From positions 335,797-399,796 of IMG/VR virus record IMGVR_UViG_3300036770_003657: a DNA stretch of 64,000 nucleotides; one strand, 5' to 3'. Of this stretch, positions 3,891-60,491 are shown piece after piece. The notes below the pieces were generated by a model. That model made no database searches. It saw only the letters and a list, made by a program, of their open reading frames with translations, and was not told the origin of the DNA. The position numbers and the translations under genes are program-made. Numbering within the stretch: the stretch's first letter is position 1; the number at the start of each line of letters is the position of its first letter.

Positions 3891-4574
3891 TTACCTTAAC
3901 TCTGGAAACAAACACTCCTGTATGAATATACGTACATCTTCCTCATTCAATCCCAAACTGGTCATTACCTTAGGCGTATGTGGGTTCATCTTTTGGTTCT
4001 GTGCGTAAAAATTCTGTTGTTCGCTAGTATTAAGTACAGTGTTATTAGTTTCACCTACTGTGCTTAAGTAATGATCTACACCCTTGCGAGCCATTTCAAA
4101 GATTTGATCTAGTTCGTGTTCGTCCTGTACATTACCTGCTGCCACCATGCTCTTGCTGAATATACGGGTAGCCCAATCTGGTAGTGCTCTTTCCTTACGC
4201 CATTCCATCTTACTTACTTCGTTGGCAAACCATTCACACATAGGATGATTAGCATCCCCTGTAGGACTATAATCATAAAAACAGCCGGTAATTTTATTCT
4301 TACCGGCTATAACATCAAATCCAAAGATTGGGGCAGGGTTGTGTGTATGTGGAAATACGCAACAATGCATCATCCACAATCCCTTTTTCTCTCTAGCATC
4401 TACAACATCTACGTGAGCCCTACGATATGCTTCACTGGTCCAAACACGGTTTACCCATCCTGGTTGATTAAACCTATCCATACCTGGTTCAAATGCTTCA
4501 GTACCAGTGCGTTCAAAACTTTGCTCTAATAGGTGTTGTACATTAATTAGAGCGTCCCAAACTTTACTCTCCAT
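3891..4574 (-). CDS. pcyX: Ferredoxin-dependent bilin reductase, PcyX/PcyA type
   Basis: RRAHVDVVDAR, LWMMHCCVFP, PIFGFDVIAG and NQKMNPHT motifs; directly downstream of and overlapping heme oxygenase. Confidence 0.88.
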   Translation of the reverse strand: MESKVWDALINVQHLLEQSFERTGTEAFEPGMDRFNQPGWVNRVWTSEAYRRAHVDVVDAREKKGLWMMHCCVFPHTHNPAPIFGFDVIAGKNKITGCFYDYSPTGDANHPMCEWFANEVSKMEWRKERALPDWATRIFSKSMVAAGNVQDEHELDQIFEMARKGVDHYLSTVGETNNTVLNTSEQQNFYAQNQKMNPHTPKVMTSLGLNEEDVRIFIQECLFPELR

Positions 4575-5112
4575 TGTACAAATCCCTCATCATCTTAATG
4601 GCCCATTCAAAGGCCACACGAGCCTCATCACCTAACTCATCTGTGAGTTCGGCTCTGATTGCTACTTTAAGTTGATCAGGATTAGTAAACTCATAGAACT
4701 TGCCACTGCTAATGTGTGCTACTTGTTTCTTAATAATTAAGCCACCATTTAGGTCACCCATATGACGACAATACAAATGTGCCTTAAGTAAATGTCTACG
4801 TTCTAGGTCATTGGTTAGCTGGACCAAATAGTCATGATAGGCTAGGGTCTGTGGTAGCCAAACAAACTTGTGCTCTGGCCCAGCTAATTCCATAAAATCT
4901 TGATATATTGCTGGTAAACGCTCAATACCCTGTATGTTAGCAAAGTGTCCTAACATACGATTACCAAATTCAATTGGTCCGTATATGGGCAATAATTGGT
5001 ATAGATAATTTGCGTAATCTTCCTTACTAATTTTACCACTTAGTAATAGTTTAGCAAATTTAGTTGTTTCCGCCTCGTGATGTAAATCCTTAGTAATCTC
5101 TCTTAAACTCAT
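4564..5112 (-). CDS. hemO: Heme oxygenase
   Basis: TKDLHHEAE (proximal His) and HLYCRHMGDLNGG (distal helix). Confidence 0.92.
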   Translation of the reverse strand: MSLREITKDLHHEAETTKFAKLLLSGKISKEDYANYLYQLLPIYGPIEFGNRMLGHFANIQGIERLPAIYQDFMELAGPEHKFVWLPQTLAYHDYLVQLTNDLERRHLLKAHLYCRHMGDLNGGLIIKKQVAHISSGKFYEFTNPDQLKVAIRAELTDELGDEARVAFEWAIKMMRDLYNGE

Positions 5113-5438
5113 TCTTCCTCCATCTTCACTTGTAAGGGAAATCCGTTAGCCCTAGCCAAGCTAAATGTTTCACTTGATTTGACTTCTGCGATTTCATAAG
5201 TATATGTACCTGCAATACCACTTCCAGACTCGTGAATTTGAAGCGTAATATCTTTAGCTGTTTCGGGAGTATGTTTAAAAATTTCAATTAATATACTAAT
5301 TACAAACTCCATAGGAGTATGATTATCATTAAGGAAAACTACATGATATCGTTTGGGCTCAGACACCCTAATTTTAACTTTTTCATCTAGCACTACATCT
5401 GAGGTTACTTCTGTATCTACAGCCATTATTGACTCCAT
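5109..5438 (-). CDS. clpS: ATP-dependent Clp protease adaptor ClpS
   Basis: YHVVFLNDNHTPMEFV...IHESG...AEVK...ARANGFPL. Confidence 0.93.
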   Translation of the reverse strand: MESIMAVDTEVTSDVVLDEKVKIRVSEPKRYHVVFLNDNHTPMEFVISILIEIFKHTPETAKDITLQIHESGSGIAGTYTYEIAEVKSSETFSLARANGFPLQVKMEEE

Positions 5439-5444
5439 ATAAGT

Positions 5445-5462
5445 GGGGGAGTTTCCTCCCCC
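5445..5462 (-). other. GC-rich hairpin with GAAA loop between hsp20 and clpS (stabiliser or weak terminator)
   Basis: GGGGGAG-GAAA-CTCCCCC on the minus strand; no clear U-tract. Confidence 0.5.
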
Positions 5463-5468
5463 TGTTGA

Positions 5469-5906
5469 TCAAGCTACGTTGACTTGAATCTTCCTTGGCA
5501 ATAATGCTTCTGGAACGATTCGTTCGATTACTACAGTAAGTAATCCATTTTTAAGATCAGCACTCTTAACTTCCATATGTTCTGAAAGAGCAAATGTTCT
5601 ATCAAAACTACGATATGCTAGGCCCCTGTGAAGATATTCAATTTCTCCATCAGTTTCTACTGGCTTCTTTTCACCAGTAATGATTAACTGGTCCTGATCA
5701 ATACTTACATCAATTTCATCTCTACTAAAACCTGCTACTGCTAGGGTAATAGTGTAGATATCACCTTTGCGTTCTAGGTTATAGGGAGGATAGTTGTTAT
5801 TGGCCATACTGTTCCCCCAACTACGTTCCATAGTGTTAAAAATACGATCAAAACCAATCAGCGCTCTATTCAAAGCCGCTGTATCCATTCTAGCTAATTG
5901 TGTCAT
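5469..5906 (-). CDS. ibpA: Small heat shock protein (Hsp20/IbpA family)
   Basis: NYPPYNL, LAVAGF, YLHRGLAYRSFDRTFAL, A.LKNGLL. Confidence 0.93.
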   Translation of the reverse strand: MTQLARMDTAALNRALIGFDRIFNTMERSWGNSMANNNYPPYNLERKGDIYTITLAVAGFSRDEIDVSIDQDQLIITGEKKPVETDGEIEYLHRGLAYRSFDRTFALSEHMEVKSADLKNGLLTVVIERIVPEALLPRKIQVNVA

Positions 5907-5910
5907 AAAA

Positions 5911-5970
5911 TTTCTCCTTTATTAAGCAAGATGCGTGTAGCCTCACCTGAGCACTACACGACTATTTATA
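5911..5970 (-). promoter_or_regulatory. Late promoter TATAAATA plus ROSE-like RNA thermometer for hsp20
   Basis: TATAAATA at 5963-5970; 5' hairpin CGTGTAG/CTACACG; 3' hairpin UCUUGCUU-AAUA-AAGGAGA sequestering the SD. Confidence 0.7.
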
Positions 5971-5975
5971 AGGCA

Positions 5976-7853
5976 TTAGGCTGCGTTTTTAACTTCTGTA
6001 AAATCTACATCCGTAATGTCCTTATCCTGTTGTTGAGGCTGTGCGTTTTTAGCAGTGTAAATAACCTGTGCCGCAGCAGCTAGGTCACTCATCTTCTGTG
6101 TTATTGATTCCTTAGTACCTGTAGCAATCTCAGTTAATAGTGCTGTGATACTAGTTTCAATCTTATCTTTATCATCACTGCTAATCTTATCCTCAACTTC
6201 CTTCAAATCCTTACGAATTTGATGGACTTGTCCGTCTACGCTATTCCTTAAATCAACAATCTCACGCTGTTTGCGATCTTCCTCAGCGTTGGCTTCAGCT
6301 TCACGGATCATTTTTTCAATTTGATCCTTACTTAAACCACCATCTGATTTAATAGTGATCTTGTTTTCTTTGCCTGTAGTCTTATCCTTGGCACTAATTT
6401 TCATAATACCATTAGCATCTACATCAAAGGTTACTTCAATTTGAGGCATACCTCTGGGCTGTGGCATAATACCTTCTAGGTTAAACTCGCCTAGTAGTTT
6501 ATTATCCTTTACAAACTCACGTTCACCTTGGAATACCTTAATAGTGACAGCAGGTTGATTGTCATCTGCTGTGCTAAATGTTTGACTAGCCTTTGTGGGA
6601 ATAGTAGTATTCTTTTGAATGATCTTGGTCATTACTCCACCAAGTGTTTCAATACCAAGACTCAATGGTGTAACATCTAATAACAATACGTCATTGCGTT
6701 CGCCGCTTAGTACAGCACCTTGTACAGCAGCACCCACTGCCACTGCTTCATCTGGGTTAACATCCTTACGTGGCGCTTTACCAAATAACTTTTCTACAGC
6801 GTCCTGTACCTTGGGCATACGTGTCATACCACCAACTAAAATAATTTCATCAATATCTGCTGGTGTAACTCCTGCGTCTTTCATAGCAGTACGACAGGGA
6901 GCAATGCTACGTTCAATTAAATCTTCAACCAATGCTTCTAATTTAGCACGAGTAAGTTTTAGATTCATATGTTTTGGCCCGCTAGCATCAGCAGTAACAT
7001 ATGGTAGATTAATATCTGTTTGTTGGCTGCTACTTAATTCAATTTTAGCCTTTTCCGCTGCCTCTTTAAGACGTTGTAGAGCTAATACATCTTTAGTCAA
7101 GTCAATACCTTGATCCATCTTAAAAGTATCAACTAAGTAATCCATAATACGTTGGTCGAAGTCTTCACCACCTAAGAAAGTATCACCATTAGTGCTTAGT
7201 ACTTCAATTTGTTTGTCATTACCCAAGTTAGCAATTTCAATAATGCTAATATCAAAAGTGCCACCGCCCAAGTCATATACTGCTACCTTACGATCTTTTT
7301 TATCCGTCTTATCAACGCCGTAAGCCAACGCGGCAGCAGTCGGTTCATTAATGATGCGAAGAACTTCCAAGCCAGCAATACGGCCAGCATCTTTAGTAGC
7401 TTGACGCTGACTATCATTAAAATAGGCCGGAACAGTAATAACAGCTTGGGTAACATCATAACCTAAATAATCTTCAGCAGTCTTTTTCATTTTACGCAAT
7501 ACTTCTGCGCTGATTTGAGGAGGTGCTAACTCCTTGCCCTGTGCCTTAACCCAAGCATCACCACTTGAGTTTTCAATGATTTCATAGGGCATTAGATCTA
7601 AATCTTTTTGTACAGCCTCTTCTTTAAACTTACGTCCAATTAAGCGTTTGGCTGCGTATACTGTATTCTTTGGATTAGTAACAGCTTGTCTTTTAGCACT
7701 GGCACCTACAAGAATTTCTTCATCTGTATAGGCTACTATACTGGGAGTAGTACGTGCTCCTTCGCTGTTTTCAATTACTTTGGGATTGCCGCCTTCTATA
7801 ATGGCGACGCAACTGTTAGTAGTACCGAGATCGATACCGATTACCTTACTCAT
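5976..7853 (-). CDS. dnaK: Chaperone DnaK (Hsp70)
   Basis: [35 protein letters not shown]; 625 aa; betaproteobacterial-like segments ([25 protein letters not shown]). Confidence 0.98.
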
Positions 7854-7858
7854 ATGTA

Positions 7859-7913
7859 TCTCCTTAAATTAAGCAAGAATTAAATGGTCTTAGTTAAGCA
7901 CCATTATTATTTA
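7859..7913 (-). promoter_or_regulatory. Late promoter TAAATA plus ROSE-like RNA thermometer for dnaK
   Basis: TAAATA at 7908-7913; 5' hairpin AATGGT/ACCATT; 3' hairpin UCUUGCUU-AAUUU-AAGGAGA. Confidence 0.65.
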
Positions 7914-7915
7914 TT

Positions 7916-17821: not shown

Positions 17822-18706
17822 TTACCATGTAGTAGTATTTTTACCACTATCTCCTATTATTTGTCCAATACTATATGCAGCAGGAGCAGCTACAAATTCC
17901 ACTGGATTATTATGATGTTGTGTTACCCAATCTCTTATTCTAGTCCAGTCTTGAAATAAGCTTTGTGTAGTTGTATATGTTCTTTTAGTACCTTTATTAG
18001 TCGTTAATTCGTAGCTATATGTAATTGTGTAAGTTAAATCATTGGTCCAATAATATATTTCAGATTCAGGTCTTGTTGGACATTCAGTTATATCATACTC
18101 TGTTAAAATTCTAGGAGTAGTGTGTGGAGCAGAGTCAGAAGTAGTAGCACTTGATAAATGATCAACATATTTCATTGTTCCAGTCGGTATCATATCATAA
18201 AATCCACTGGCTTCACAATTATCTGCATTGATAGTCAATGTAATATGATCTAAAAATCTTGGGCGTCTTGGCATACTAATATCAGTACATTGTACTTCAA
18301 TAATTTCTTCATCTTCTTCATCATTATACCATAAGTAAGGTATAGGATCATAATCTGGATTTGGTACTTCTCCTGCATAATTGCCATCACCATCATATGC
18401 AGCTATAGTTTGGGGTAAAAAATGTGCTGGGTTAGGGATATGTGGTGGTTTTACTATTGATGCTCCAACTGTAAAACTAAAATTAGCATAAATTTCTACA
18501 CTGCCTCCAGAACCAGACCAATTAAAAGTATTTCTATAGTCATAGCTATAACTAACACTGTCTCCAGGTTTATCATTACTAGAAGGAGTAAATGTTTCTG
18601 GAGCACGCCACTCTGCTCCATTTTTAAATGGAAAAATAAATGGAAAATCTGTATTAGGTGGAGGAGGTGACTGTATCAGTGTATAGCCATCTATTATCAC
18701 ACTCAT
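17822..18706 (-). CDS. Hypothetical protein, probably baseplate/tail-associated
   Basis: 294 aa, coupled between the giant fibre and PAAR genes. Confidence 0.6.
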   Translation of the reverse strand: MSVIIDGYTLIQSPPPPNTDFPFIFPFKNGAEWRAPETFTPSSNDKPGDSVSYSYDYRNTFNWSGSGGSVEIYANFSFTVGASIVKPPHIPNPAHFLPQTIAAYDGDGNYAGEVPNPDYDPIPYLWYNDEEDEEIIEVQCTDISMPRRPRFLDHITLTINADNCEASGFYDMIPTGTMKYVDHLSSATTSDSAPHTTPRILTEYDITECPTRPESEIYYWTNDLTYTITYSYELTTNKGTKRTYTTTQSLFQDWTRIRDWVTQHHNNPVEFVAAPAAYSIGQIIGDSGKNTTTW

Positions 18707-21700
18707 TATAGTCTCCCTACAACTACTTCAATAACGCCTTCATCACCATCAAAATCTTCTAGTGCTTTACCTATTACCATACCCATACGTGGATCATCAT
18801 GTGCCTTGGCATAGCCATCTCCTGCACTGACCAACATATCACCTTTGCTTATCTTACCACGTACCTTAACTGGTACACGACCTTGTAGAGCAACTGCTAC
18901 AACGTGTTCACCTTCTAGTTCACTGTTCATTAAGTGTGCTGGGTTCTTACTAACTACACCTACTACTTTACGTGTTAAATCTGTACCTATGGTAACTTCA
19001 TTTACTCCACCAATCATTAGAACTGTGCCTTCTTCGTATTTTGCATCAGCAAGATAGTTCTCTGCCAAGTCAGCATATTTTGCTTGTGTAGCTACACCAT
19101 TGAATACAGAAGCATATAATGTATCAGTAGCAGGATTACAGTATATACCACCTGTTCCATAAACACTGTTACCGCTACCCCATAGCATTTGGTATGTAGA
19201 ATTACTATCGTTATTGTAATTGATAGTAACTTGCGAGGAAGTGGAAGCTGAAGCAGCATTACCTGTACAGCTTCCTGAACTTCCACTTACATTACCTGTT
19301 ACATTTCCTGTTAGATTACCAGAAAATGTGGCAGTTATAGTACCTGCACTGAAATTACCACTTGCATCACGTTTGACTAATGTACTTGCTGTATTTGCTG
19401 TAGCACTTGATACATTAAAGGTAGTTCCACTTAATGAAAGATCGGTTCCGGCACTGTAAGTAGTATTAGTATCTGGATTAGCTGGCATAGTCAATGTTAT
19501 TGAACTAGTTCCTGTGATGTGTCCGTTTGCATCATAAGTAACACTAGGTATTTTAAATGTACCACCAAATGCCAGTGTTCTTGTTGCTCCTCCATCACTT
19601 ATTGTACCAGCTGTTACTGAATTACTATGATTAAACGTAGTTCCACTTAGAGATAATCCAGTTCCAGCACTATAGGTAGTATTAGTATCTGGATTAGCTG
19701 GCATAGTCAATGTAATAGTATTGGTACCAGTAATATGTCCATATGCATCATAAGTAACACTAGGTATTTTAAATGTACCACCAAATGCCAGTGTTCTTGT
19801 TGCTCCACCATCACTTACTGTACCAGCTGTTATTGCACTATTGGCATGCCCTAAAGTTATTGTACCTGCTGTACTTTGATTAGCAGTAAACGTACCGGTA
19901 CCAGTTAATCCATTATTACCCTGTACAGTAAGTGTACCATTGCCTATACTGACTGTAGCTGTAGCTACACTAGCAGCAGTAACGTGACCATAACCATCAA
20001 ACTCAAAACTAATATCTTGTATAAATGTATTATCACTGTTATCACTGCTTAAATTACCTACACTGCTAGTGTCAGCATGACTTAGTGTAATAGTACCTGC
20101 TGTACTTTGATTAGCTGTAAATGTACCACTACCAGTTAATCCATTGTTACCCTGTACAGTAAGTGTACCGTTACCTATACTAACTGTGGCAGTAGCTACA
20201 CTAGCACTAGTAACGTGTCCAAATCCATCAAAATCAAAACTAATATCTTGTATAAATGTATTACCACTATTATCACTGCTTAAATTACCTACACTGCTAG
20301 TGTCAGCATGAGAAATATTAACAGTGACACCTTCACCACTTCCTGAAATAGTTAACCCACTAGTTCCAGTTTGACTACCTGGAGTTCCAGAACTTACTGC
20401 TGCTATATAATTACCAGTAGTATCAGTTCCTAGTGCTACACTATCAATTCCAATAGTTGTAGTCATGCTAACATTGTTAGATCCATCAAATGTCACACTA
20501 CCACTAACATCACCAGTTAAGGCAATAGTTCTGGCTGTAGCTAATTTTGTAGCAGTGTCAGCGTTCCCACTCAATCCACCACTTACACTACCTTGGAAAG
20601 TTCCTGCGATAACAGTTGACCCTGCTCCAAATGTCCATTTATCAACACTTTCATCCCATAATAAACTTACGTTGGTATCAGTACCTCTTTCTATTTCTAT
20701 ACCAGCATTTTGTGTTGGTTCAGCAGTTTCGTTACTATTCAGTACAATGATATTATCAGCTAACTCAATAGTTTCAGTATTGATTGTAGTAGTTGTGCCA
20801 CTTACTGTTAGATTACCACCAATAACAGTATTACCTGTAACGTTAAAGTTTCCACCAACATTAAGGTTTTCAGTTACCGCTACTCCACCAGTAACAATTA
20901 AAGTACCAGTTGACGTATTTGTACTGGATATATTACCTGCCATTTCAATACGGCCAGTCCCAAATACCTTAAACTTATCTGCACTGGCTAAATTAGTAGG
21001 TCCACCATAAGTAAAGGCTATGTAGCTGGTAGTATCAGTTACCGTAATAACCTTATCTATAGCCCAATGACTCTTTAGGTTATTATCCTTTACAAACGCA
21101 CTACCATTCCAATTTAAATTAGTTAACCAACTAAATCTATTGGTTGTTCCTACACTAGTAAATCTAGTTTTAAAATCTGTAGTATAAGCACTTTGTAAAG
21201 TAACACTAGTTAATGCCCCACTGCCATTGTAGGTAATATTAAAAGTTGGATCATCTATAGTAGGTGCTGCTTTATAAATCACCTGTCCACCAGTAGTAAA
21301 GTTAATAGTGCTACCATCAGTGGCTTGGAACGTCATGGTGTTACTTGCTGTTAATGTCTTAGCATTAGCCAATGTAAATGTACCTGTGCTGTTGGAAATA
21401 GTCATTCCATTTACAGTCTTATTGGTCAATGCTTCTGTACCTGCCAATGTAGCCAATGTACCTGTCGTTGGGAAGGTTACACTGGTTGCAGCAGTCATAG
21501 TAAATGTGCTGGCATATGCTCCTGATGTAGTTAAGTTACCTCCTAAGGTTATAGTCTTTGTACCATTGTTAACACCAGTGCCACCATATGTTGGGCTAAT
21601 TATGCTGGCTTGCCAAGTACCTGTACTAATAGTGCCTACTCCAGTTAGACTACTATTGACAACACCTGAACCTAATGTTGTACTACTCAATACATCTACA

Positions 21701-24700
21701 CCGTTGATCTTATAAGTTTTACCTGTGGCAAGATCCATGTTCTCACTACTGGTCCAGCTACTTGTAGATTGTATCCAACGGAAAAGTTTATCAGTGGTGC
21801 CTTTTATTGTTATACCACCTCCAGCTGCTGTAGCATCAGTAATTCCACCAGTGTTGAAAACTACAGCCACTCCATTTGGACTAATTTGATCTGGTGGTGT
21901 ATCAGCTGTAAACGTAAACAAATTAGCACCATTAATAGCAGTTACTCTTGGATTGGCACCTAATTGACCACCACTTACTCTACTCAATGTCATCCCAGGA
22001 ATCATTCCTGCTGTACTAGCAGTAATTGTAGTTGTCAGTGCTCCAATAGCGGTAAAGTTAATATTGCCACTACGACTTGATATTGGTTCTACTGAGCCTA
22101 ATTCAATATTGTTATCATCCATTTGGATGTCATATGCATTAAGAGTGCTGGCAGCACCGGTAATATTAACATTACCATTTACAGTGAGCCCGTTTAAGGT
22201 TATGCTGTCGGTCCAAACTGGACGTTTATTAGCACTGCCTAAACTCACTGGCTGAACATTTAACACAGAATTAGTATCACCTATAGGTAATTTTTGTATT
22301 ATGGTGGAGCCACTGGCATATAACATGTCCCCGACAGTATAACTGGCAATATTAGTACCACCCTTATCTACAGGAACTTGACCAATAATATTACTTGGTG
22401 TTAGATAATATAATCCATCTTGTCCATCTAGAGTACCTGCATCTACTACACCTGATTTAATACCAACAGCACCCTGACTACCTCCGGTACCTACTTCAAA
22501 TTGACTCTTATTAAATGACGCTACACCTAAGTTTGTATGGCCAGGGATATTTGCATTTTCCTGTCCTCCACTGACTACATCCACACCAACAGTAACTTCA
22601 TTGTAGAATTCTTGTATGCCTCCAGGTCCTGGATCAAAGAATGGGCCAGTTATAGTAATAGCACTATCAACACTTGGTTTTTTGATCTTTTGTACGGCCT
22701 TGGCCCATGTACTATCGCCTCTTAAAAAGGTGTTACTATTAGCAGTACCAATAGCTAATCTAGTAGTGCTCATTATACCACTAACAATATTAGTTGTATC
22801 TATATTACTGGCGCTTAGACTACTCCAGTTTTCTGCCAGTATACTAGCATTATCTACAACACCAATAATTTTAATGCTTTGCTTTCTAAAACTAGCAACC
22901 CCAGTACCAGTATTAGTAAAATTAAATGCACCAATAGTAAGACCTAATGTACTGGCCACTGCATCAGCTCTACCTTCATGTATAGTAAAGGTGTTAGTAG
23001 TCACACTTCCTACAAAGAATATGCTGTTAGTTAGTATACCGTATGGTGGATCTGCTGCAATAATTTTTACTGCATCACCAGTAGCAAATCCATGATCTGG
23101 AATATAAACTGTATCTTTGGTGATATCTAATATAGATAATGTTAAAGTTTGATTACCTGCACCAGAGTTAACAATTGTTAACTTGGTTGATAGACTATAA
23201 GTTGTATAAAGTTCAATAGTATCAGCATCAATACTTTTCACATAATAGATGCTATTATTAACAATCCCACCTAATGGTGTTCCAAATCCTGCATTATATT
23301 GTACAGCATCACCATCATCAAATGGGTGACCAACGATAGTTATACGACTTAGCGCAGTATTAACATTGCCTCCTGAACCTGTACTAGCAGCATTAAATGT
23401 AGCAACTACAGTACTGTCTAATTGATCAGTTGTTTTCGTTACAACATTTGCATCTTCTGTAAATTCTGGGGCTATACTATTTGCATTAAACTTCAATGCG
23501 CCAACAATATCAACATACACACGATTTTGTATTTGGCTAACCTTAACACTAAATGCGCTTCCACCTGTACGTCCATTCAAATTTGCATCATTTGCACTGA
23601 GTCTATCTACTGTGGTATACCCACTTCCACCGGCAGTTAGTACTACATTAGTAACGACTCCACCACTTAGGAACAGGTCTGCCCTAGCTCCAGTTCCTGA
23701 TCCTCCTGTTAAAGGCACATCAGTATAAAATCCTGAAGGTGGTTGAGTATATCCACTACCCCCTGCTAATCCTGTTACTGGATCATTGCTATTATCTAGT
23801 GCATTAGCAACACCTTCTACAATATATTCTATAGTGCCTTGTGCTTGACTATTACTACCTGTTACACTAGTTACTCCTGTAAAATCATAAGTTTGAGTTG
23901 GGTCTAATAGTAATATCTGTTTACTATCTAATTCACTTAAAATGTAATTGGTATTTTGATCTGGAATAATACCTCCTACTAGGGTAGGTGTTAATCCAGT
24001 GCTTGCACCATTAAGAGTTATTTCTCCTACAGTATCAAATGTATCGTCAAAAAATTCACCTAAACTTCCAATGACTACAGTAGTAGAATTATTGCCACCG
24101 ACTACTCGACCAGTTGCTCCAGAACTGGCTTGTAGGATTAAGTCACCATCAACGGCCACTAATACACCATCTAGAGTCAACGATACTCCACTATATGTTT
24201 CAATGGCTAAATCACCATTTAAAATACTAGTAGGAGGTACTGTATTGACCAAGTTTAGTCTACTACGATATCCATTACTTCTATATACTAAGAAGTTTCT
24301 TAATGGTGGTATCTGATCAGCACTTAATTTTCCTAGTGCATTTAACTGAGGGATACCACCTGGTTGAGTAGTAGTTGTAAGTTCTTTGTCAATAAAGTCT
24401 CCTAGTCTATTTTCTAAGAAACTTCTAACAGCCAACTGTGTGCTTAATCTATTATGACTTGGTCCGCCTACTTCATTATCACCGAGATCAATATCAGCAC
24501 TAAATTCTTCAATAGTAATATTACCAACAGCCAACTTCAACGCATCTAAAGCAGCAATACTAACAGTGTTTGTAAATTGTACATTACCTGTTTTGTTTTC
24601 AGCTTTAATAAAATCACCAACTTTAAAGTCACCAAGTTCATTGGTTCCTGAACTATATACACGCCCTGGTAATTCACTGACTTGTTCATATTCAACTCTA

Positions 24701-27700
24701 GTACGTCCACCGTTTTGTGGTAATGCATTATAGTCAGTTCCGCTACCTGCATATTCCCAAGTGTGGCTACTGCTGTTAACAATACTAGGTCTATGCAACC
24801 ATATCTGTTTACTTGGCAGTGTTTCTAAATTGATTAGTTCATTACCACTGGTAGTGGCCAATATCTTAAATGTTGCCGTGTATAAGTTATCTACGTTTTG
24901 GACATCAGTTACATCAATATTTAAAATAGCAGGGCTACCATTGTCATATTGAATAACAGTATCTAAGGTAAAGTTATTTCTAATAAAATTTTCCCCAACT
25001 AATACTTTTTCTACGCTAACAACTAGGCTTCGTGTTGTTGGATCCCAACTGAATATATATGCTCTATTTGGTGTTATACCACTGGTTGTACCTTCGATTA
25101 CTCTACCTGGAATAAATGTATAACTTTGTCCTATAGGAGGAGGTTCTACTTGTAATTTTTGATATACAACGTGACTTTCAGTGAGATCATCAATAAAAAA
25201 TTCTTTAATATTCTTTAATAAAAGATGTTCACCTGTTGGTAGTGGAGCAGTAAATTTTGCCTTTATTTCAAAACCATCGTCCAAATATAATTCAAATTGA
25301 TTGGCATTTAAAATTTTAATTACATAAGTTTGTTCGTCATAAAGACCTTTAATTAAACTATTTCCATTAGCTCTATAAACTATTTTCTCTGTATTTTGAA
25401 AACCGTGAGCAGGAATTGTTATGACATTAGTATTGACATTTATAACTGGTTCGATTTGTGCAGGACTAGTTCCTGGAATGGTGACATTATTACTTGGTGT
25501 AAAAGGTACCTGATCATCCACCTGTTTGTAACTATTAGTTACATCTCCAATATTACTATAGTCAACTATTTCTGGAACATTAATGATACTGTCAATAATA
25601 TCTATAATGATATCAAATAAATCACCAACTCTACTCTGTGCATCAGGATGTACTAGCGCAATAGTTAACGATTTTAGTTCTTGGAAGGCAGCAATATTTT
25701 GAGTTCTTTGATTTATTAGAGCTGCCACAGTGCTTGTAGAATAGGCTACACCAGCTTCAACGCTTTTACTATTGCCTCCTGTTAGTACATCATATGCTAC
25801 TGCCTCTAATACTAGTAAAGTATCTCTTCTACAAGTATCTTGATCATATGTAAATCCTGTATAATATGGCGCTGTGTTGGCAGTTACTTGGCTGTCAATC
25901 CAAGTTATTAGTGCATCTCTTAATTCTTCTTTGTTATTTAAAATTGTACTATATGTTTCTCTATATACAGGATTTCTAAATCTTATTACATAGTGCTGTA
26001 CTGGTAGGTCCCCAAAACCAATAGCAGTAATAGTTTGTTGTGCTCCTGCGCTGCCTGTAGCAACTACAATACCTTTATTAAAATCAAAAGCATTAGGACT
26101 ATAACCATTGGCCCTTAAAGCAAATTGACCAAAGTTAGTAGCACTATTGGTAATACTTAGATATCCACCGCTTTGACAATAACTACCATTTAAACAGAAG
26201 ATCTGGAAACAGCTAACAATCTGTGCATATGCATCATTAATAACACGATATCCTGTACCCCCAAAGCTCAACATAGTAAATGCATTACCTACCATTGATT
26301 TACCTTGTTGCGGAGCAGGTCCTTCTACTGGGTTCTCTGCTTCAATTTGATTAACAGGTATATTTGGTGTACGTACTTTACTACCATCAACCAATACACC
26401 ATTACCACCTAAGAAGCTGATTATACTACAGTTCTGCACATATGGGCTAATACTAATAACTGGTTTATTATTTGGTAGTCTAGTATATCCTACACGACTA
26501 CATTCTGGATCAGCTGGATCATCAAACGCCACTGCATAGTCAAATGTAAAGCTAGGTATATTGTTTACATCCAGTGCATCTCTGAAAGTTATCTCTGTAA
26601 AATAACAGCCATTACGTACACGTAGCATATCCTTACCAGCATTAAGTGGTCTAATATTACAGGCACGTAGACCAGCTCCTACTACACTAACGTTATCTGG
26701 AATAATAATTGGATTATCTTCGTAATAGTCTCCACTAGCAACTGCTATAACAATACGCTTTTCGTTTGGAATGTAGTCAGCAACAAAAGCTACAGTTTCG
26801 GTTTGAATGATTTCCTTGTCTGCTAGTAATGCTGCTCTAGCATCACTCTTAGTTGGACTTATTGGTGTAGCATTAGGATATTCTGTATTTGGTGCTTGAC
26901 TGGGTCCTTGATCTATAATTGTTACTACATATCCTAAAAGTTCCTGAGCTTTATCTATGGCAGCACTGCTGGCTGGATCTCCTACACCAAATGCGTTGAG
27001 ATCATTTTCTAATACTAAATTGATTATTTCTTCTTTCAAATATCTATATGTTATTGCACTGGCTTGTCTATCATTGAATATAGGTAATCCCATTCCATAA
27101 CTAAAATATTTTTTAGCAGCATCTATAGTTTGACTATTGCCACCATACATTAGGTCATAGGCTAAACTGTAGACTAGATATCTTATATCACGAGCGCACT
27201 TTTCTTCATTATAAGTAAAGTTATTAAACTCAACAGTAATAAATTGACTTACTCCAGTAATAATAGCAGCTTTGTTTTCCTGTATCAGTCCAAAATTAAG
27301 TTGCGTTGTTGGATTAGCCGAACTAATGTCTGGAAATACTTTATTGTTTAAAGAACTAGTATTTTCATCTGTAATAACATCAATGATTATATCAACTAAA
27401 TCTTGGCATTTGATAGTTTGTTCAGAATTAGTAGCAGGATATAATGAAGTATCTTGTGTAAGAAGATTGGTACTAGATTTAGTAATTGGTACTGCGTTAA
27501 CAATATCACCAATAATCTCTTGTAGTCTTGTATATGCTGCTAGTGTTTGTGCCTTCTCACCAGCACCTAATTGTAGCACGGCTCCAAATATATAAGCTTC
27601 TGCATTAGAATAGGTTGCACTATTACCGCCATATAATACATCGTATGTTATAGCATCAACTATAAATTCTACATCACGTCTACATTTATCTATTATACTT

Positions 27701-30700
27701 CCTGGGGTGCTGGCATATGATGGATAAGTATCAATTAACCAAGCAATGACTTCCTCTCTAATAAATGCTTTATTTGTTTGTAATTGATTTTTAGCATTTA
27801 AAACTGCAACTTCTGCATTACTGGGATCAGTGAAAGACACTGCATCAATAGCAGGATAACCTTCCTCAAGAAAATCAATTATTTCCTGTACTTTATTTTT
27901 ATAGCTTAAGAAGAATGTGCCACTGGTTACATATTGTTCACTTTCTCTGTATAATTGTTTTAATGCTGCTGCTGTCTGTATCTTTTGATTATAGAAAGTG
28001 CCTAATTGATTCTGTCTATCATAACTATATTGATTTTGTCTAGTATTTAAGTTAGTTCCCAGTACTATGTCATATATAGCTCCTTCAATGACTAGACTCA
28101 TATCTCTTTCACATTTGGTTACTGTGGGGCCAGTATAACTAAATCCTAAAAATGTATTATTGACATAGTTAGTACCTTGATCAACTATATATTCAATATT
28201 ATCTAATAATAAGTCTTTGGCATTGACATAACCTACTGGCAATCCTGCAGGAGTTGGCATAGTAATTGCAGGTAATATTGTAGGTATTTTAGCAATACCA
28301 TCTCCAGTACCAGGTACAGCGGCTACAAAGGTATCTCCTACTGTATAAGATTCACCAGTAGTACCAGCTACAGCGTTCCAATCAGTGCTTCCTAATACTT
28401 CAATTTCATACGTAATACCCGCAACTAAATCTGTTACAGGATATGATACATCAACTACGTTGATTAAGTCACCAGCATATGTATTCGCCAGTATGTTTGT
28501 AATACTTTGAATACTGGCAGCTACTTCAGTTGCCTCAGTTCCACTTTGAGTATCTACAGCCTTTAACAATAGATAGTTTAAAGCTCTAATGGTAATATCT
28601 TTTTGACTAATTAGTACTGCACTGGCTGTGGCATTGCTATAGGTAAATCCTGCCTTTACGCTTTGCCAATTACTGCCATAGATAAGATCATATCCAATAG
28701 CATCAATAATTAAACCAACATCTCTAAAACAAGTTTGATCATTAAATTCATTTCTTTGTTTATAGACTAAATTACTGGCTATTTGTAGGGCACGTTTAAT
28801 AGTTTTTACTGGTTTATTAATGCCATCAAAATTATCATCACCATTAGTTGCACTAACAGCTACTTGTCCACCACCAAATAAATCAGCACTAACAAATTCT
28901 AATTTATTTCCATCTCGATTAAGTGATAATATTGATCCATCTACACCTAAAACTCTTGGAAATGTTAATGTATAACTGTTTACAAACTCTTCCGGTGTTG
29001 TTCCTGCTGGGGCACGTAATCCTACATAGTTATTGCCGTTTGAAGTTAACTCTTTTAATCTAATCTCGCCTTGATTATTAACATTAAGACCGTCAGTGTT
29101 GATTAAGGTAGATCTTATTGTAGATGGAGTTGTCTCACCTATCCTAGTATTATCAATAGTTCCACTGTTGATATCTACGTTGGCTAATGTGCTAGTGCCA
29201 TCTACAGTAAGATCTTCAGCAATATACACATTGTTGTTTACTGTAATATTATTTACTGTAATATCATCTAATAACAAACTGCCTAAAGTTGCTTGGCCAG
29301 TAACATCGAGGTCACCACCAATATTAACATTACCAGTAGTATCAAGTGTATTGGCATCAATGTTATCAGCATTTATATCATTACTTGTTATTGTGCCTGT
29401 GAAATTACTAGTACCAGTAACATCTAGATTGCCACCTACATGTAAGTTTTCGCTTATTCCTACACCACCTGTTACTACGACGGTTCCAGTAGTTGTATCG
29501 GTAGAACCTATATTAGCCTTTGCATATACCTGTCCATCTAAATTAGTCTCTAAATTAACTGTTAAGTTTTCAATAGTAGCATTATCAAGTACATCTAATA
29601 TATCAGTTTCTATATTAGTGGCATCAACGTCACCAGTCAAATCACCTGTAACATCACCTGTAACATTACCAGTATACATAGCATCGGTACCTGTAGTACC
29701 TCTATCCAATATTACAGTTTCAGTGACTACACCACCAGTGTCCTTATAAAGAATAATATCTGTGTATGCTTTTGCATCAAACCCATTAGTACCATTTTCA
29801 AAAACTTTTACACTTACATTTTCAGCAAATATATCACCAGTGCTTGGTCCAATAATAGTACCTTCAAACTCACCAATAAATCTTTCAGTGGCTTCGATTA
29901 TTGTTCCTGTTATGGCTCTAGGTTCTTCTGCTCCAATTACAGTGGCATCAATATTCCCACCATTTATATCAACTTGATCTAACCTACTAAGCCCATAACT
30001 GGTTATATTACCACTTACCTTACCGATAAACTCAGCTTCTACATAACCTGAATCTAAGGGTGCTCCACCTGTACCATTCTCCAATACTTTTGTAATACCA
30101 TCTTCAGCATAGATATCACCAGCAAAATTTCCGCTTATGCTACCTTCAACATTACCATAGAATACAGGTGGTTGATAACTTAATACATTTGTTGGGCCAC
30201 CTGTTCCATTATCTAATATTTTAGTAGTGCCATCAGCAGCATATAAATCACCAACTACATTACCTTCTAGTTTACCAACAAATTTTACACTGGCAGTAAT
30301 TACAGTTCCTGTGATTAAGGTAGGACCGCTATTACCAATTATAGTGCTGTTAATAAATCCACCGTTTAATAACAAACTACTTATTTGACTGGTTCCAGTA
30401 GTTTGAGTTATTCGACCTAACAATTCACCTGTAAAAGTTGCATCTGTTCCATTGGTGCCATTCTCTAAAACTTTTACTCCACTATCGCTATAAATATCAC
30501 CAAAAACATCACCAAACAAGTTACCAGTAATATTGCCTTGAATGTTAGCTAGAATTTCTTCTTCTACATTTATACTATTGGCTACTATATCGCCAGCTAC
30601 ATTAAGATCGCCTCCAATACCTACTCCACCAGATACAATCAATGTTCCTGTATATGGGTCTAAACTAGGCGTATTATCAGAAAGTATTGTTTTAACATTA

Positions 30701-31035
30701 ACAGTAATTATTTCTGGATCAGCTACTAGGGTTTCTACAGTATTGTTTGTCATGACAATACTATTGATTCTATCTTCAGGGCCAATGCTTAGAAAAGTAT
30801 AGGGATTGAATTCGGAAACAACTTCACCTAAAGTAACAATATAGGATAAGTTGTTCCACCTAGTAAAACCATCACCTATTTTAAAGTTTTTTTGATCTAG
30901 GTCAACCCCAATCTCGCCCTGTGCAAGAATCGGGTTAATATCTATCCAGTTTTGTCTTGAATCTCTTCTTAATTGAATCCTTTTGGCCATTATTGTCTCC
31001 AACTGTAGTTTGGAGATAGCCTCCAAACCGCCCAT
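18706..31035 (-). CDS. Giant tail fibre / receptor-binding protein (4,109 aa; alternative start at 30990)
   Basis: Mtd_N-like RIQLRRD...W...NPILAQGEIG...KIGDG; G/T/N-rich beta repeats; pectin-lyase-like beta-helix; C-terminal ADLAENY...VALQGRVP fibre tail; TAAATA at 31041-31046. Confidence 0.9.
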   Translation of the reverse strand: MGGLEAISKLQLETIMAKRIQLRRDSRQNWIDINPILAQGEIGVDLDQKNFKIGDGFTRWNNLSYIVTLGEVVSEFNPYTFLSIGPEDRINSIVMTNNTVETLVADPEIITVNVKTILSDNTPSLDPYTGTLIVSGGVGIGGDLNVAGDIVANSINVEEEILANIQGNITGNLFGDVFGDIYSDSGVKVLENGTNGTDATFTGELLGRITQTTGTSQISSLLLNGGFINSTIIGNSGPTLITGTVITASVKFVGKLEGNVVGDLYAADGTTKILDNGTGGPTNVLSYQPPVFYGNVEGSISGNFAGDIYAEDGITKVLENGTGGAPLDSGYVEAEFIGKVSGNITSYGLSRLDQVDINGGNIDATVIGAEEPRAITGTIIEATERFIGEFEGTIIGPSTGDIFAENVSVKVFENGTNGFDAKAYTDIILYKDTGGVVTETVILDRGTTGTDAMYTGNVTGDVTGDLTGDVDATNIETDILDVLDNATIENLTVNLETNLDGQVYAKANIGSTDTTTGTVVVTGGVGISENLHVGGNLDVTGTSNFTGTITSNDINADNIDANTLDTTGNVNIGGDLDVTGQATLGSLLLDDITVNNITVNNNVYIAEDLTVDGTSTLANVDINSGTIDNTRIGETTPSTIRSTLINTDGLNVNNQGEIRLKELTSNGNNYVGLRAPAGTTPEEFVNSYTLTFPRVLGVDGSILSLNRDGNKLEFVSADLFGGGQVAVSATNGDDNFDGINKPVKTIKRALQIASNLVYKQRNEFNDQTCFRDVGLIIDAIGYDLIYGSNWQSVKAGFTYSNATASAVLISQKDITIRALNYLLLKAVDTQSGTEATEVAASIQSITNILANTYAGDLINVVDVSYPVTDLVAGITYEIEVLGSTDWNAVAGTTGESYTVGDTFVAAVPGTGDGIAKIPTILPAITMPTPAGLPVGYVNAKDLLLDNIEYIVDQGTNYVNNTFLGFSYTGPTVTKCERDMSLVIEGAIYDIVLGTNLNTRQNQYSYDRQNQLGTFYNQKIQTAAALKQLYRESEQYVTSGTFFLSYKNKVQEIIDFLEEGYPAIDAVSFTDPSNAEVAVLNAKNQLQTNKAFIREEVIAWLIDTYPSYASTPGSIIDKCRRDVEFIVDAITYDVLYGGNSATYSNAEAYIFGAVLQLGAGEKAQTLAAYTRLQEIIGDIVNAVPITKSSTNLLTQDTSLYPATNSEQTIKCQDLVDIIIDVITDENTSSLNNKVFPDISSANPTTQLNFGLIQENKAAIITGVSQFITVEFNNFTYNEEKCARDIRYLVYSLAYDLMYGGNSQTIDAAKKYFSYGMGLPIFNDRQASAITYRYLKEEIINLVLENDLNAFGVGDPASSAAIDKAQELLGYVVTIIDQGPSQAPNTEYPNATPISPTKSDARAALLADKEIIQTETVAFVADYIPNEKRIVIAVASGDYYEDNPIIIPDNVSVVGAGLRACNIRPLNAGKDMLRVRNGCYFTEITFRDALDVNNIPSFTFDYAVAFDDPADPECSRVGYTRLPNNKPVISISPYVQNCSIISFLGGNGVLVDGSKVRTPNIPVNQIEAENPVEGPAPQQGKSMVGNAFTMLSFGGTGYRVINDAYAQIVSCFQIFCLNGSYCQSGGYLSITNSATNFGQFALRANGYSPNAFDFNKGIVVATGSAGAQQTITAIGFGDLPVQHYVIRFRNPVYRETYSTILNNKEELRDALITWIDSQVTANTAPYYTGFTYDQDTCRRDTLLVLEAVAYDVLTGGNSKSVEAGVAYSTSTVAALINQRTQNIAAFQELKSLTIALVHPDAQSRVGDLFDIIIDIIDSIINVPEIVDYSNIGDVTNSYKQVDDQVPFTPSNNVTIPGTSPAQIEPVINVNTNVITIPAHGFQNTEKIVYRANGNSLIKGLYDEQTYVIKILNANQFELYLDDGFEIKAKFTAPLPTGEHLLLKNIKEFFIDDLTESHVVYQKLQVEPPPIGQSYTFIPGRVIEGTTSGITPNRAYIFSWDPTTRSLVVSVEKVLVGENFIRNNFTLDTVIQYDNGSPAILNIDVTDVQNVDNLYTATFKILATTSGNELINLETLPSKQIWLHRPSIVNSSSHTWEYAGSGTDYNALPQNGGRTRVEYEQVSELPGRVYSSGTNELGDFKVGDFIKAENKTGNVQFTNTVSIAALDALKLAVGNITIEEFSADIDLGDNEVGGPSHNRLSTQLAVRSFLENRLGDFIDKELTTTTQPGGIPQLNALGKLSADQIPPLRNFLVYRSNGYRSRLNLVNTVPPTSILNGDLAIETYSGVSLTLDGVLVAVDGDLILQASSGATGRVVGGNNSTTVVIGSLGEFFDDTFDTVGEITLNGASTGLTPTLVGGIIPDQNTNYILSELDSKQILLLDPTQTYDFTGVTSVTGSNSQAQGTIEYIVEGVANALDNSNDPVTGLAGGSGYTQPPSGFYTDVPLTGGSGTGARADLFLSGGVVTNVVLTAGGSGYTTVDRLSANDANLNGRTGGSAFSVKVSQIQNRVYVDIVGALKFNANSIAPEFTEDANVVTKTTDQLDSTVVATFNAASTGSGGNVNTALSRITIVGHPFDDGDAVQYNAGFGTPLGGIVNNSIYYVKSIDADTIELYTTYSLSTKLTIVNSGAGNQTLTLSILDITKDTVYIPDHGFATGDAVKIIAADPPYGILTNSIFFVGSVTTNTFTIHEGRADAVASTLGLTIGAFNFTNTGTGVASFRKQSIKIIGVVDNASILAENWSSLSASNIDTTNIVSGIMSTTRLAIGTANSNTFLRGDSTWAKAVQKIKKPSVDSAITITGPFFDPGPGGIQEFYNEVTVGVDVVSGGQENANIPGHTNLGVASFNKSQFEVGTGGSQGAVGIKSGVVDAGTLDGQDGLYYLTPSNIIGQVPVDKGGTNIASYTVGDMLYASGSTIIQKLPIGDTNSVLNVQPVSLGSANKRPVWTDSITLNGLTVNGNVNITGAASTLNAYDIQMDDNNIELGSVEPISSRSGNINFTAIGALTTTITASTAGMIPGMTLSRVSGGQLGANPRVTAINGANLFTFTADTPPDQISPNGVAVVFNTGGITDATAAGGGITIKGTTDKLFRWIQSTSSWTSSENMDLATGKTYKINGVDVLSSTTLGSGVVNSSLTGVGTISTGTWQASIISPTYGGTGVNNGTKTITLGGNLTTSGAYASTFTMTAATSVTFPTTGTLATLAGTEALTNKTVNGMTISNSTGTFTLANAKTLTASNTMTFQATDGSTINFTTGGQVIYKAAPTIDDPTFNITYNGSGALTSVTLQSAYTTDFKTRFTSVGTTNRFSWLTNLNWNGSAFVKDNNLKSHWAIDKVITVTDTTSYIAFTYGGPTNLASADKFKVFGTGRIEMAGNISSTNTSTGTLIVTGGVAVTENLNVGGNFNVTGNTVIGGNLTVSGTTTTINTETIELADNIIVLNSNETAEPTQNAGIEIERGTDTNVSLLWDESVDKWTFGAGSTVIAGTFQGSVSGGLSGNADTATKLATARTIALTGDVSGSVTFDGSNNVSMTTTIGIDSVALGTDTTGNYIAAVSSGTPGSQTGTSGLTISGSGEGVTVNISHADTSSVGNLSSDNSGNTFIQDISFDFDGFGHVTSASVATATVSIGNGTLTVQGNNGLTGSGTFTANQSTAGTITLSHADTSSVGNLSSDNSDNTFIQDISFEFDGYGHVTAASVATATVSIGNGTLTVQGNNGLTGTGTFTANQSTAGTITLGHANSAITAGTVSDGGATRTLAFGGTFKIPSVTYDAYGHITGTNTITLTMPANPDTNTTYSAGTGLSLSGTTFNHSNSVTAGTISDGGATRTLAFGGTFKIPSVTYDANGHITGTSSITLTMPANPDTNTTYSAGTDLSLSGTTFNVSSATANTASTLVKRDASGNFSAGTITATFSGNLTGNVTGNVSGSSGSCTGNAASASTSSQVTINYNNDSNSTYQMLWGSGNSVYGTGGIYCNPATDTLYASVFNGVATQAKYADLAENYLADAKYEEGTVLMIGGVNEVTIGTDLTRKVVGVVSKNPAHLMNSELEGEHVVAVALQGRVPVKVRGKISKGDMLVSAGDGYAKAHDDPRMGMVIGKALEDFDGDEGVIEVVVGRL
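19420..20313 (-). repeat. Two in-frame tandem duplications in the fibre gene (2x231 nt and 2x216 nt)
   Basis: cactgctagt at 20061 and 20292 (231 apart); atctggattagctggcatagtcaatgt at 19471 and 19687 (216 apart). Confidence 0.9.
25580..28780 (-). repeat. Five phycobiliprotein-like helical repeats within the fibre
   Basis: Cys codons of the C-x-R-D motifs at 28729, 28111, 27682, 27196 and 25831; each followed by I/L..A/S..YD...G[GST]N. Confidence 0.75.
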
Positions 31036-54370: not shown

Positions 54371-54395
54371 CAATATCTAAGTTTTCGCATATAAT
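54367..54395 (+). promoter_or_regulatory. Consensus sigma70 early promoter
   Basis: TTGACA (54367) -17- TATAAT (54390). Confidence 0.85.
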
Positions 54396-54423
54396 AGACT
54401 ATGGTTAACAAATAGGTGATTGT

Positions 54424-59128: not shown

Positions 59129-59129
59129 T

Positions 59130-59746: not shown

Positions 59747-59756
59747 TATATAGTGT

Positions 59757-60181: not shown

Positions 60182-60182
60182 T

Positions 60183-60485: not shown

Positions 60486-60491
60486 TACATC

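Follow-up and report, generated by a model that had tools for sequence, protein, structure and literature searches.

A freshwater jumbo phage of 399,796 bp, related to T4, carries a conserved block of chaperone, ClpS, heme oxygenase and PcyX-type bilin reductase genes, and its giant tail-fibre proteins hold about 41 phycobiliprotein-like modules that keep the cysteine of the pigment-binding site. This may suggest that the phage makes a bilin for its own virion, a reading to which we assign a probability of roughly 0.45. The DNA analysed here (the window) comprises the last 64,000 nucleotides of this genome (IMG/VR record IMGVR_UViG_3300036770_003657, positions 335,797 to 399,796). The features considered are the following.

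3891..4574, minus strand: PcyX-type ferredoxin-dependent bilin reductase (FDBR, 227 aa), overlapping hemO by 11 nt (4564-4574)
4564..5112, minus strand: hemO, heme oxygenase (182 aa)
5109..5438, minus strand: clpS, ClpA adaptor (109 aa), its stop overlapping the hemO start as ATGA (5109-5112)
5445..5462, minus strand: intercistronic hairpin between hsp20 and clpS, GGGGGAG-GAAA-CUCCCCC, a 7-bp G+C stem with a GAAA tetraloop and no U tract
5469..5906, minus strand: hsp20, IbpA-like small heat-shock protein (145 aa)
5913..5931, minus strand: ROSE-like element, UCUUGCU, a short loop, then AGGAGA (Shine-Dalgarno, SD), 6 nt before the AUG of hsp20
5934..5960, minus strand: 5'-proximal stem-loop of the hsp20 leader (hairpin 1)
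5963..5970, minus strand: T4-type late-promoter-like box TATAAATA, 56 nt upstream of the hsp20 start
5976..7853, minus strand: dnaK (625 aa), immediately upstream and part of the conserved block
7854..7915, minus strand: dnaK leader with a AATAAATA box, a hairpin, then UUCUUGCU...AAGGAGA, of the same architecture as the hsp20 leader
18706..31035, minus strand: giant tail-fibre protein P0001 (4109 aa), with an ATAAATA box upstream
25531..28881, minus strand: region of P0001 (aa 719-1835) with five phycobiliprotein-like modules, Cys at aa 769, 975, 1118, 1280 and 1735
46793..47989, plus strand: 5-aminolevulinate synthase (vAlaS), first enzyme of tetrapyrrole synthesis

A preliminary description of the sequence had listed the promoter box, the hairpin, the gene order, the overlapping junctions and seven reductase residues, and all of these observations were confirmed. 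Its interpretation, a single late and possibly heat-gated operon in which bilin synthesis is timed with virion morphogenesis and serves a structural acceptor rather than host photosynthesis, is only partly supported (see below).

Pfam profiles identify each gene of the block above the curated cut-off. The small heat-shock protein matches HSP20 (61.8 bits) and PHROG 432; its best NCBIfam models are IbpA and IbpB, below their cut-offs. ClpS matches at 94.7 bits, whereas the NCBIfam equivalog cut-off is not reached (91.7 against 149); the phage also encodes ClpP and a 757-aa Clp_N protein as a possible partner. The heme oxygenase matches Heme_oxygenase (75.8 bits), and its alignment to HO-1 places H11 on the proximal His25 and GDLNGG on GDLSGG. 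The reductase matches Fe_bilin_red (58.2 bits, cut-off 31), is much closer to the solved PcyX (5OWG, E 2.7e-66) than to the best PcyA (3.1e-13), and is 48% identical to the FDBR of pelagiphage Mosig. Residues D56, M68, H70, C72, D87, N197 and H199 align with identical residues of 5OWG and are invariant in 81 sequences. D56 corresponds to PcyX Asp55, named as the PcyX-specific catalytic residue (PMC11480375), and H70 and D87 to His69 and Asp86. A related freshwater phage enzyme lacking Asp55 makes PCB instead (PMC11480375). DnaK matches HSP70 (865.8 bits), and its nearest cellular homologues are from Betaproteobacteria (66-76% identity), which points to a betaproteobacterial host. No alternative genetic code was needed.

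The genes hsp20-clpS-hemO-pcyX are collinear in 74 of 79 related IMG/VR contigs, and dnaK precedes hsp20 in 72 of 79. The 513-aa ORF just downstream of pcyX (2339-3880) has no Pfam or PHROG hit and is present in only 5 of 79 relatives, hence it is not part of the conserved unit. Megablast of the locus against 50,697 phage records gave no match. Adjacent, overlapping hemO and PcyX-type FDBR genes are known from T4-related aquatic phages, as is a 'broken cassette' with a valaS gene (Ledermann et al. 2016/2018; PMC11480375, Nat Commun 2024). The present genome resembles these in the cassette, the freshwater setting, the Asp55 equivalent and a 5-aminolevulinate synthase gene elsewhere on the genome, found by a Pfam Aminotran_1_2 search and confirmed by NCBIfam TIGR01821 (557.9 bits, cut-off 338.6). 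It differs in that the cassette is fused into a fixed dnaK-hsp20-clpS-hemO-pcyX block in a clade of ~400-kb jumbo phages. In Mosig, the cassette sits next to neck genes and 2OG-Fe oxygenases, and Mosig has its own ferredoxin. The published work names no acceptor, whereas this genome offers a candidate.

Late expression is plausible for this genome. Variants of NATAAATA, also known from cyanomyoviruses, are the most enriched 8-mers upstream of ORFs, and a gp55 homologue exists, along with MCP, portal, TerL and sheath homologues. The box TATAAATA is the octamer of T4-type late promoters, which work with gp55, gp33 and gp45. By itself it is not enriched, as the window has 6 copies against 12.3 expected; what exceeds chance is its placement. 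Genome-wide, 53 of 90 ATAAATA copies lie within 80 nt upstream of an ORF start in sense orientation, in about 4.6% of the sequence space, with strong enrichment 15-60 nt upstream of ORFs that include structural genes. Such a box precedes hsp20, dnaK and the fibre gene. However, the box before hsp20 is not conserved: only 12 of 73 relatives have ATAAATA there, while in the other 61 the box is TTGACAC-N17-TAACAT of sigma-70 type (the closest relatives) or TATAAT (most others). No gp33 homologue was detected by BLAST with the Mosig protein. Late timing is an inference from motif statistics and the gp55 homologue.

The suggestion of heat gating has a concrete candidate in the leaders of hsp20 and dnaK, which resemble the ROSE and ROSE_2 RNA thermometers of proteobacterial small heat-shock genes (Rfam RF00435, RF01832) in location before an ibpA-like gene, in having two hairpins, and in U(U/C)GCU opposite AGGAG with a potential bulged G; the U/C variation is as in the ROSE consensus. 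Only two such sites exist in 400 kb, before hsp20 and before dnaK, and the motif is kept in 100 of 108 unique leaders of relatives. Relatives also keep hairpin 1 of the hsp20 leader with different stem sequences, i.e. with compensatory changes. In contrast to known ROSE elements, this one is phage-encoded and also precedes dnaK. ROSE_2 is the best Rfam family for the dnaK leaders, but its scores of 17.7 bits (window) and 23.9 bits (the sequence labelled L083) are far below the gathering score of 65. The predicted dnaK hairpin sequesters the SD, with unpaired probability rising from 0.03 at 5 C to 0.30 at 45 C, whereas the hsp20 leader fold is ambiguous and its MFE structure does not show the ROSE-like hairpin below 45 C; SD occlusion of hsp20 and dnaK ranks only 29th and 32nd among 51 genes, which gives no support to a thermometer. 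Moreover, elements of this type act on translation of the gene they precede. Since clpS starts 30 nt after the hsp20 stop, behind a stable hairpin, and is not coupled to hsp20, heat gating of hemO and pcyX is not supported, and a switch of the whole block by heat appears very unlikely.

The reading as one operon is compatible with the sequence but unproven. The genes lie on the same strand with short gaps or overlaps, no promoter-like box is present between hsp20 and clpS in the window, and sigma-70-like and terminator-like sites are at chance level. The -4 overlap of clpS and hemO is found in 57 of 75 relatives. The intercistronic hairpin is not scored as an intrinsic terminator; it is conserved in most relatives with compensatory stem changes and mostly GNRA loops, with a predicted energy of about -16 kcal/mol in relatives' equivalents. 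Four metatranscriptome libraries hold only short pieces of relatives, 80-95% identical, of hsp20, clpS, hemO and pcyX; none of these contigs bridges a junction, and contig depth cannot rank genes. Alternatively, dnaK and hsp20 may be stress- or sigma-70-driven chaperone genes, expressed early or throughout infection, and clpS-hemO-pcyX a separate, translationally coupled unit fed by read-through or by its own promoter. The sigma-70-like boxes of most relatives, the stable hairpin, the separate short RNA contigs covering hsp20, and an ATAAATA or TATAAT box between hsp20 and clpS in several relatives favour this view, whereas the conserved order and spacing, the lack of a U tract and the late-type boxes of this genome speak against it. 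We consider it a doubtful alternative.

The inference of a structural acceptor was strengthened most. P0001 matches Pfam Mtd_N and Phycobilisome (PF00502, 41.7 bits, cut-off 22.2) as well as PHROG tail-fibre families, and together with two more giant proteins it carries the about 41 modules. In 39 aligned modules Cys and Asp are invariant; the module HMM scores a third protein as well. Profile hits in PDB are almost only phycocyanin alpha chains, with Cys-x-Arg-Asp in register with C84/R86/D87, although the E-values are marginal (0.005 and up). An AF2 model, with a globin-type fold, reached pLDDT 90. The top ~50 Foldseek hits of the model are all phycobiliproteins (E-values 0.008-0.07), as are the top seven hits in VIA, which gives Z scores of 15.8, 14.2 and 13.9 to APC and the ApcE bilin domain (Z 15.8 with rmsd 2.1 A over 122 residues to allophycocyanin). 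Across 1,639 modules in 149 public proteins, Cys is kept in 95.3%, Arg in 95.3% and Asp in 98.8%. The modules differ from true phycobiliproteins in several respects. The model aligns only from about residue 30 of allophycocyanin, as the N-terminal X-Y helices are lacking; further invariant residues (Asp +14, Tyr +30) are not shared with phycobiliproteins; and instead of free ~17-kDa subunits forming (alpha-beta)3 discs, there are 5 to 37 tandem units inside tail-fibre-like proteins of 1,000-6,700 aa.

The preliminary description had recognised no ferredoxin or bilin lyase gene in the window and had proposed a search of the rest of the genome; profile searches of the whole genome for Fer2, CpeT and CpeS found none. 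Further searches for psbA (Photo_RC), AmoC, phytochrome PAS_2 and GAF were likewise negative. The lack of psbA and of phytochrome-type domains counts in favour of a structural acceptor, the lack of a ferredoxin gene against the model. The absence of a lyase gene parallels the self-attaching ApcE and the bilin biosynthesis-associated globins (BBAGs, PMC10151467).

Based on this dataset, we hypothesize that dnaK and hsp20 each have their own promoter box and a two-hairpin leader, the second hairpin pairing UYGCU with the SD in the manner of a ROSE thermometer, and that the GNRA hairpin probably acts as an RNA-stability or attenuation element. In this view, clpS, hemO and pcyX would be read from the same transcript and translationally coupled by their overlaps. 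HemO would open heme to biliverdin, with heme supply backed by the phage's own 5-aminolevulinate synthase, and the reductase, using host ferredoxin, would reduce biliverdin to a phycobilin, predicted to be phycoerythrobilin because the PcyX-specific Asp is present. The most likely consumers would be the giant tail-fibre proteins, whose modules could attach bilin at the Cys-x-Arg-Asp triad without a lyase, as ApcE and BBAGs do. The gene identities, the architecture and its conservation, the fold (as modelled) and motif of the modules, and the co-occurrence in the clade rest directly on the data, while late timing, thermosensing, co-transcription, the reaction product and activity of the reductase, and bilin attachment to the fibres are inferred.

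On the other hand, hemO, pcyX and vAlaS may be ordinary host-directed auxiliary metabolic genes, which keep tetrapyrrole flux going and recycle heme iron, detoxify heme, or supply an antioxidant or a host bilin sensor, the modules being a structural helical domain that merely descends from a phycobiliprotein-like ancestor and binds no pigment. Iron supply and host photoreceptors have been discussed for the phage cassettes, whose purpose is called 'still enigmatic' (PMC11480375). Mosig carries hemO-pcyX without any module, even in a search with a broad HMM at E 50, so modules cannot explain all phage pcyX genes. Most cyanophages with modules lack an FDBR of their own, and cyanophage virions have not been reported as pigmented. 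Only 1 of 50 module-bearing IMG/VR records holds an FDBR; we regard this count as uninformative, since these records are 1-52% complete and pcyX lies 27-75 kb or more from module genes in the five large pcyX-bearing relatives, all of which carry multi-module giant ORFs. However, iron release needs only HemO, yet the predicted four-electron reductase is kept with all catalytic residues invariant in 81 sequences; no phytochrome-type domain is encoded; and the host is probably a betaproteobacterium without phycobilisomes. A purely structural role does not explain the 95-99% retention of a single Cys plus Arg and Asp, exactly at the chromophore site, in modules that otherwise share about 25% identity. 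We consider this alternative possible, though somewhat less likely than the acceptor model.

Phage hemO-FDBR cassettes in phages of non-photosynthetic hosts have been known since 2016. The present genome makes the question of their purpose directly testable, as it pairs a complete heme-to-bilin route (AlaS, HemO, PcyX) with phage-encoded proteins that have the predicted fold and the Cys-Arg-Asp site of phycobiliproteins, and with no other bilin-binding domain type among those searched for (PAS_2, GAF). If the fibres bind bilin, these would be the first pigmented, potentially light-responsive virion fibres and a new source of self-assembling fluorescent modules. Independently, ROSE-like leaders on phage dnaK and hsp20 would be a case of phage-encoded RNA thermosensing. 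More tentatively, phycoerythrobilin made late in infection might give virions dozens to hundreds of covalently bound bilins, acting as a photoreceptor, a light-dependent adsorption switch or a photoprotective coat. The same module in the fibres of cyanomyoviruses (S-PM2, P-HM2) would then use host bilins, which could underlie the unexplained light-dependent adsorption of those phages.

The module family is large, with 1,531 representative proteins in public data; all named relatives are called 'hypothetical protein', and no paper describing the family was found. All 120 hits of a degenerate DNA pattern for the module proved to be true modules. Among the 50,697 phage records, modules occur only in cyanophages, whose hosts make phycobilins, which counts in favour of the acceptor model. 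Homologous large fibre proteins of cyanomyoviruses contain far fewer modules per protein, five in S-PM2 p091 and two each in P-HM2 096 and S-MbCM7 083, whereas the jumbo phage has up to 34 modules in one protein and brings its own bilin pathway.

The window represents the last 64 kb of a single 399,796-bp IMG/VR virus record (G000:C1:335797-399796). It has 36.6% G+C, and CheckV rates the record 100% complete. The record encodes homologues of T4-type major capsid, portal, large terminase, sheath and gp55 late sigma proteins, at 27-38% identity to pelagiphage Mosig, and is therefore a distant T4-like jumbo phage. The locus is found in DNA of freshwater, lake and subsurface metagenomes. All features of the gene block that had been noted in the preliminary description were found in the sequence, on the minus strand, and are listed here together with dnaK, its leader and the neighboring open reading frame:

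5976-7853 (-), dnaK
7854-7915 (-), dnaK leader
5970..5963 (-), the box TATAAATA
5469-5906 (-), hsp20
5445-5462 (-), 7-bp G+C stem with a GAAA loop
5109-5438 (-), clpS
4564-5112 (-), hemO, with the clpS stop and the hemO start sharing ATGA at 5109-5112
3891-4574 (-), the bilin reductase (FDBR), overlapping hemO by 11 nt
2339-3880 (-), a 513-aa ORF starting 10 nt after pcyX

All five genes (dnaK, hsp20, clpS, hemO and pcyX) are confirmed by Pfam and PHROGs. The reductase matches the solved PcyX (5OWG) at E 2.7e-66, as compared to 3e-13 for PcyA, and is 48% identical to the FDBR of Pelagibacter phage Mosig. The residues D56, M68, H70, C72, D87, N197 and H199 are present, identical in the alignment with 5OWG, and invariant in 81 sequences. 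D56 corresponds to Asp55, which is named as the PcyX-specific catalytic residue (PMC11480375), and the absence of which makes a related freshwater phage enzyme a true PcyA. HemO keeps the proximal His and the GDL-GG motif.

A scan of IMG/VR with the reductase found 334 relatives, of which 79 loci at 73-98% identity were examined. The genes hsp20-clpS-hemO-pcyX are collinear in 74 of these 79 loci, preceded by dnaK in 72. The -4 overlap of clpS and hemO occurs in 57 of 75 loci, and hemO and pcyX overlap in 76 of 79. The hairpin after hsp20 is kept in most relatives, with compensatory stem changes and mostly GNRA loops. The 513-aa ORF after pcyX, on the other hand, is variable: it is present in only 5 of 79 loci, displays no Pfam or PHROG match, and has a Pro/Gln-rich C-terminus. 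In Mosig, the cassette lies among 2OG-Fe oxygenase and neck genes, without hsp20 or clpS. The phage also encodes a 757-aa Clp_N (ClpA-like) protein, a DnaJ-domain protein and ClpP (G000:C1 about 227 kb, 228.6 kb and 268.5 kb), and together with dnaK, hsp20 and clpS it therefore carries much of a proteostasis kit.

The preliminary description had proposed that the block is expressed late. By itself, TATAAATA is not enriched, as the window has 6 copies against 12.3 expected; it is the placement of the motif that stands out. Variants of NATAAATA are the most enriched 8-mers in the 70 nt upstream of ORFs, and of 90 genomic ATAAATA copies, 53 lie within 80 nt upstream of an ORF in sense orientation. 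Such a box precedes hsp20, dnaK and the gene of a 4109-aa fibre protein. Together with the gp55 homologue, this makes a late promoter plausible in this genome. However, the box is not conserved: only 12 of 73 relatives have ATAAATA before hsp20, whereas most have TATAAT, and the closest relatives have TTGACAC-N17-TAACAT. The genome also uses sigma-70-like promoters elsewhere. Hence, the timing of expression remains an inference.

Heat gating of the block had also been proposed as a possibility. In the whole genome, the pattern T[CT]TTGCT-N3-12-AGGAG occurs only twice, in the leaders of hsp20 and dnaK. Both leaders follow the same plan, i.e. a promoter box, a 5' hairpin that covaries among relatives, and then UCUUGCU, a short loop and AAGGAGA just before the AUG (UUCUUGCU...AAGGAGA in the dnaK leader). 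The motif, with U/C variation as in the ROSE consensus UYGCU, is kept in 100 of 108 unique leaders of relatives. ROSE_2 is the best-scoring Rfam family for dnaK leaders in two independent searches, but with 17.7 and 23.9 bits it remains far below the gathering score of 65. The dnaK leader is predicted to form the SD-sequestering hairpin with a bulged G and to open with temperature, the predicted fold of the hsp20 leader is ambiguous, and neither is exceptional among 51 genes. We therefore call the element ROSE-like, and not a member of ROSE. Such an element would gate only the translation of hsp20 and dnaK, as clpS starts behind the hairpin and is not coupled to hsp20. In one related contig (L088, 943-1017, plus strand), a weak match to the Rfam 'freshwater-2' cis-regulatory RNA was seen (30.7 bits, E 0.89, gathering score 49.9), ending at an AAGGAGA-AUG start.

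Between hsp20 and the end of pcyX, no sigma-70-like or terminator-like site was found beyond chance, and the hairpin has no U tract. Read-through from the hsp20 promoter is thus the simplest reading for this window. However, some relatives do carry a promoter-like box between hsp20 and clpS. Contigs from four freshwater and aquaculture RNA libraries contain short pieces of relatives of all four genes, none of which bridges a junction, and a single transcript is unproven.

Regarding a possible acceptor of the bilin, searches of the whole genome for Fer2, CpeT, CpeS, PAS_2, GAF and psbA found no such gene. The Phycobilisome family (PF00502), however, displays hits inside giant ORFs, of which the following were considered:

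18706-31035 (-) in the window, the 4109-aa protein (P0001), with five modules of about 140-165 aa
G000:C1:103124-123172 (+), also designated L008, a 6682-aa protein (P0002) with 34 modules, 28 with C-x-R-D and 6 with C-x-E/Q/S-D
G000:C1:248244-255383 (-), a 2379-aa protein, in which the HMM scores two more modules

P0001 has an Mtd_N domain, matches to PHROG tail-fibre families, and PF00502 at 41.7 bits against a cut-off of 22.2. Ribonucleotide reductase small and large subunits (31608-35035, minus strand) lie directly upstream of its gene, and the fibre therefore sits among replication-type genes and not in a classical tail module. The genome also has ORFs of 6000 aa and 4801 aa without modules. 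An alignment of 39 modules at about 25% identity has invariant Cys, Asp (+3), Asp (+14) and Tyr (+30). In the PDB, the module profile finds almost only phycocyanin alpha chains (32 of 34 hits, E from 0.005), with Cys, Arg and Asp falling on C84, R86 and D87. An AlphaFold model of P0001 aa 1685-1835 has pLDDT 90 and pTM 0.83. The best ~50 Foldseek matches of this model are all phycobiliproteins (TM 0.6-0.7), and an exhaustive structural search puts allophycocyanin (Z 15.8, 2.1 A over 122 residues), the ApcE bilin-binding domain (Z 14.2) and phycoerythrin first, ahead of globin sensors.

The module family is broad. The profile finds 1,531 representative proteins in 1.84 billion, most of which are giant proteins with 5-37 modules. 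In 1,639 modules from 149 of these proteins, Cys is kept in 95.3%, Arg in 95.3% and Asp in 98.8%. All public names are 'hypothetical protein', and literature searches found no description of such a domain in phages.

All five large pcyX-bearing relatives (215-280 kb) carry multi-module giant ORFs. In the collection of 50,697 phage records, modules occur only in cyanophages, namely in 197 records with a module-only query and in 339 with a wider one. These include cyanomyovirus tail-fibre proteins: S-PM2 p091 (L298, 1554-11570) with five modules, P-HM2 096 (L299, 408-11441) with two modules bearing C-x-D-D, and S-MbCM7 083 (L009, 5062-14196), which contains the same modules. S-PM2 and P-HM2 are the phages whose adsorption is reported as light-dependent by an unknown, photosynthesis-independent mechanism (PMC6628666). 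The nearest cellular homologues of the dnaK of the phage described here are Betaproteobacteria at 66-76% identity, and psbA is lacking; its host probably makes no phycobilin. The phage brings HemO and PcyX as well as AlaS, a bona fide 5-aminolevulinate synthase (46793-47989, plus strand; TIGR01821 557.9 bits against a cut-off of 338.6) with an ATAAATA box just upstream of its gene, which together with hemO-pcyX forms the 'broken cassette' described previously (PMC11480375). On the other hand, Mosig has the cassette but no module, which speaks against a link between the two. A sample of module-bearing fragments rarely shows an FDBR, but as these records are fragmentary, this sample is uninformative.

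Taken together, the observations made in the preliminary description are confirmed, while the interpretation offered there, a late and possibly heat-gated operon serving a structural acceptor, is supported in part. The analysis supports a conserved and tightly coupled block. Late expression is plausible but the box is not conserved, heat sensing is plausible only for hsp20 and dnaK, and these points, as well as the single transcript and any attachment of bilin to the fibres, are inferred from sequence and predicted structure. The suggestion of a structural acceptor now has a specific and testable candidate. The cassette itself and the valaS 'broken cassette' are already known (PMC11480375), whereas the fixed chaperone/ClpS context, the ROSE-like leaders, and above all the phycobiliprotein-like modules in phage tail fibres are new. 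We assign a probability of about 0.7 to the architecture as described, whereas bilin attachment to the fibres, at about 0.35-0.4, is a tentative hypothesis.

The window further contains a run of small plus-strand ORFs (53936-63669), some of which are preceded by sigma-70-like promoters. An extended motif, GGTTGACAGGTCTTTG, is enriched upstream of ORFs genome-wide and is probably the early promoter class.
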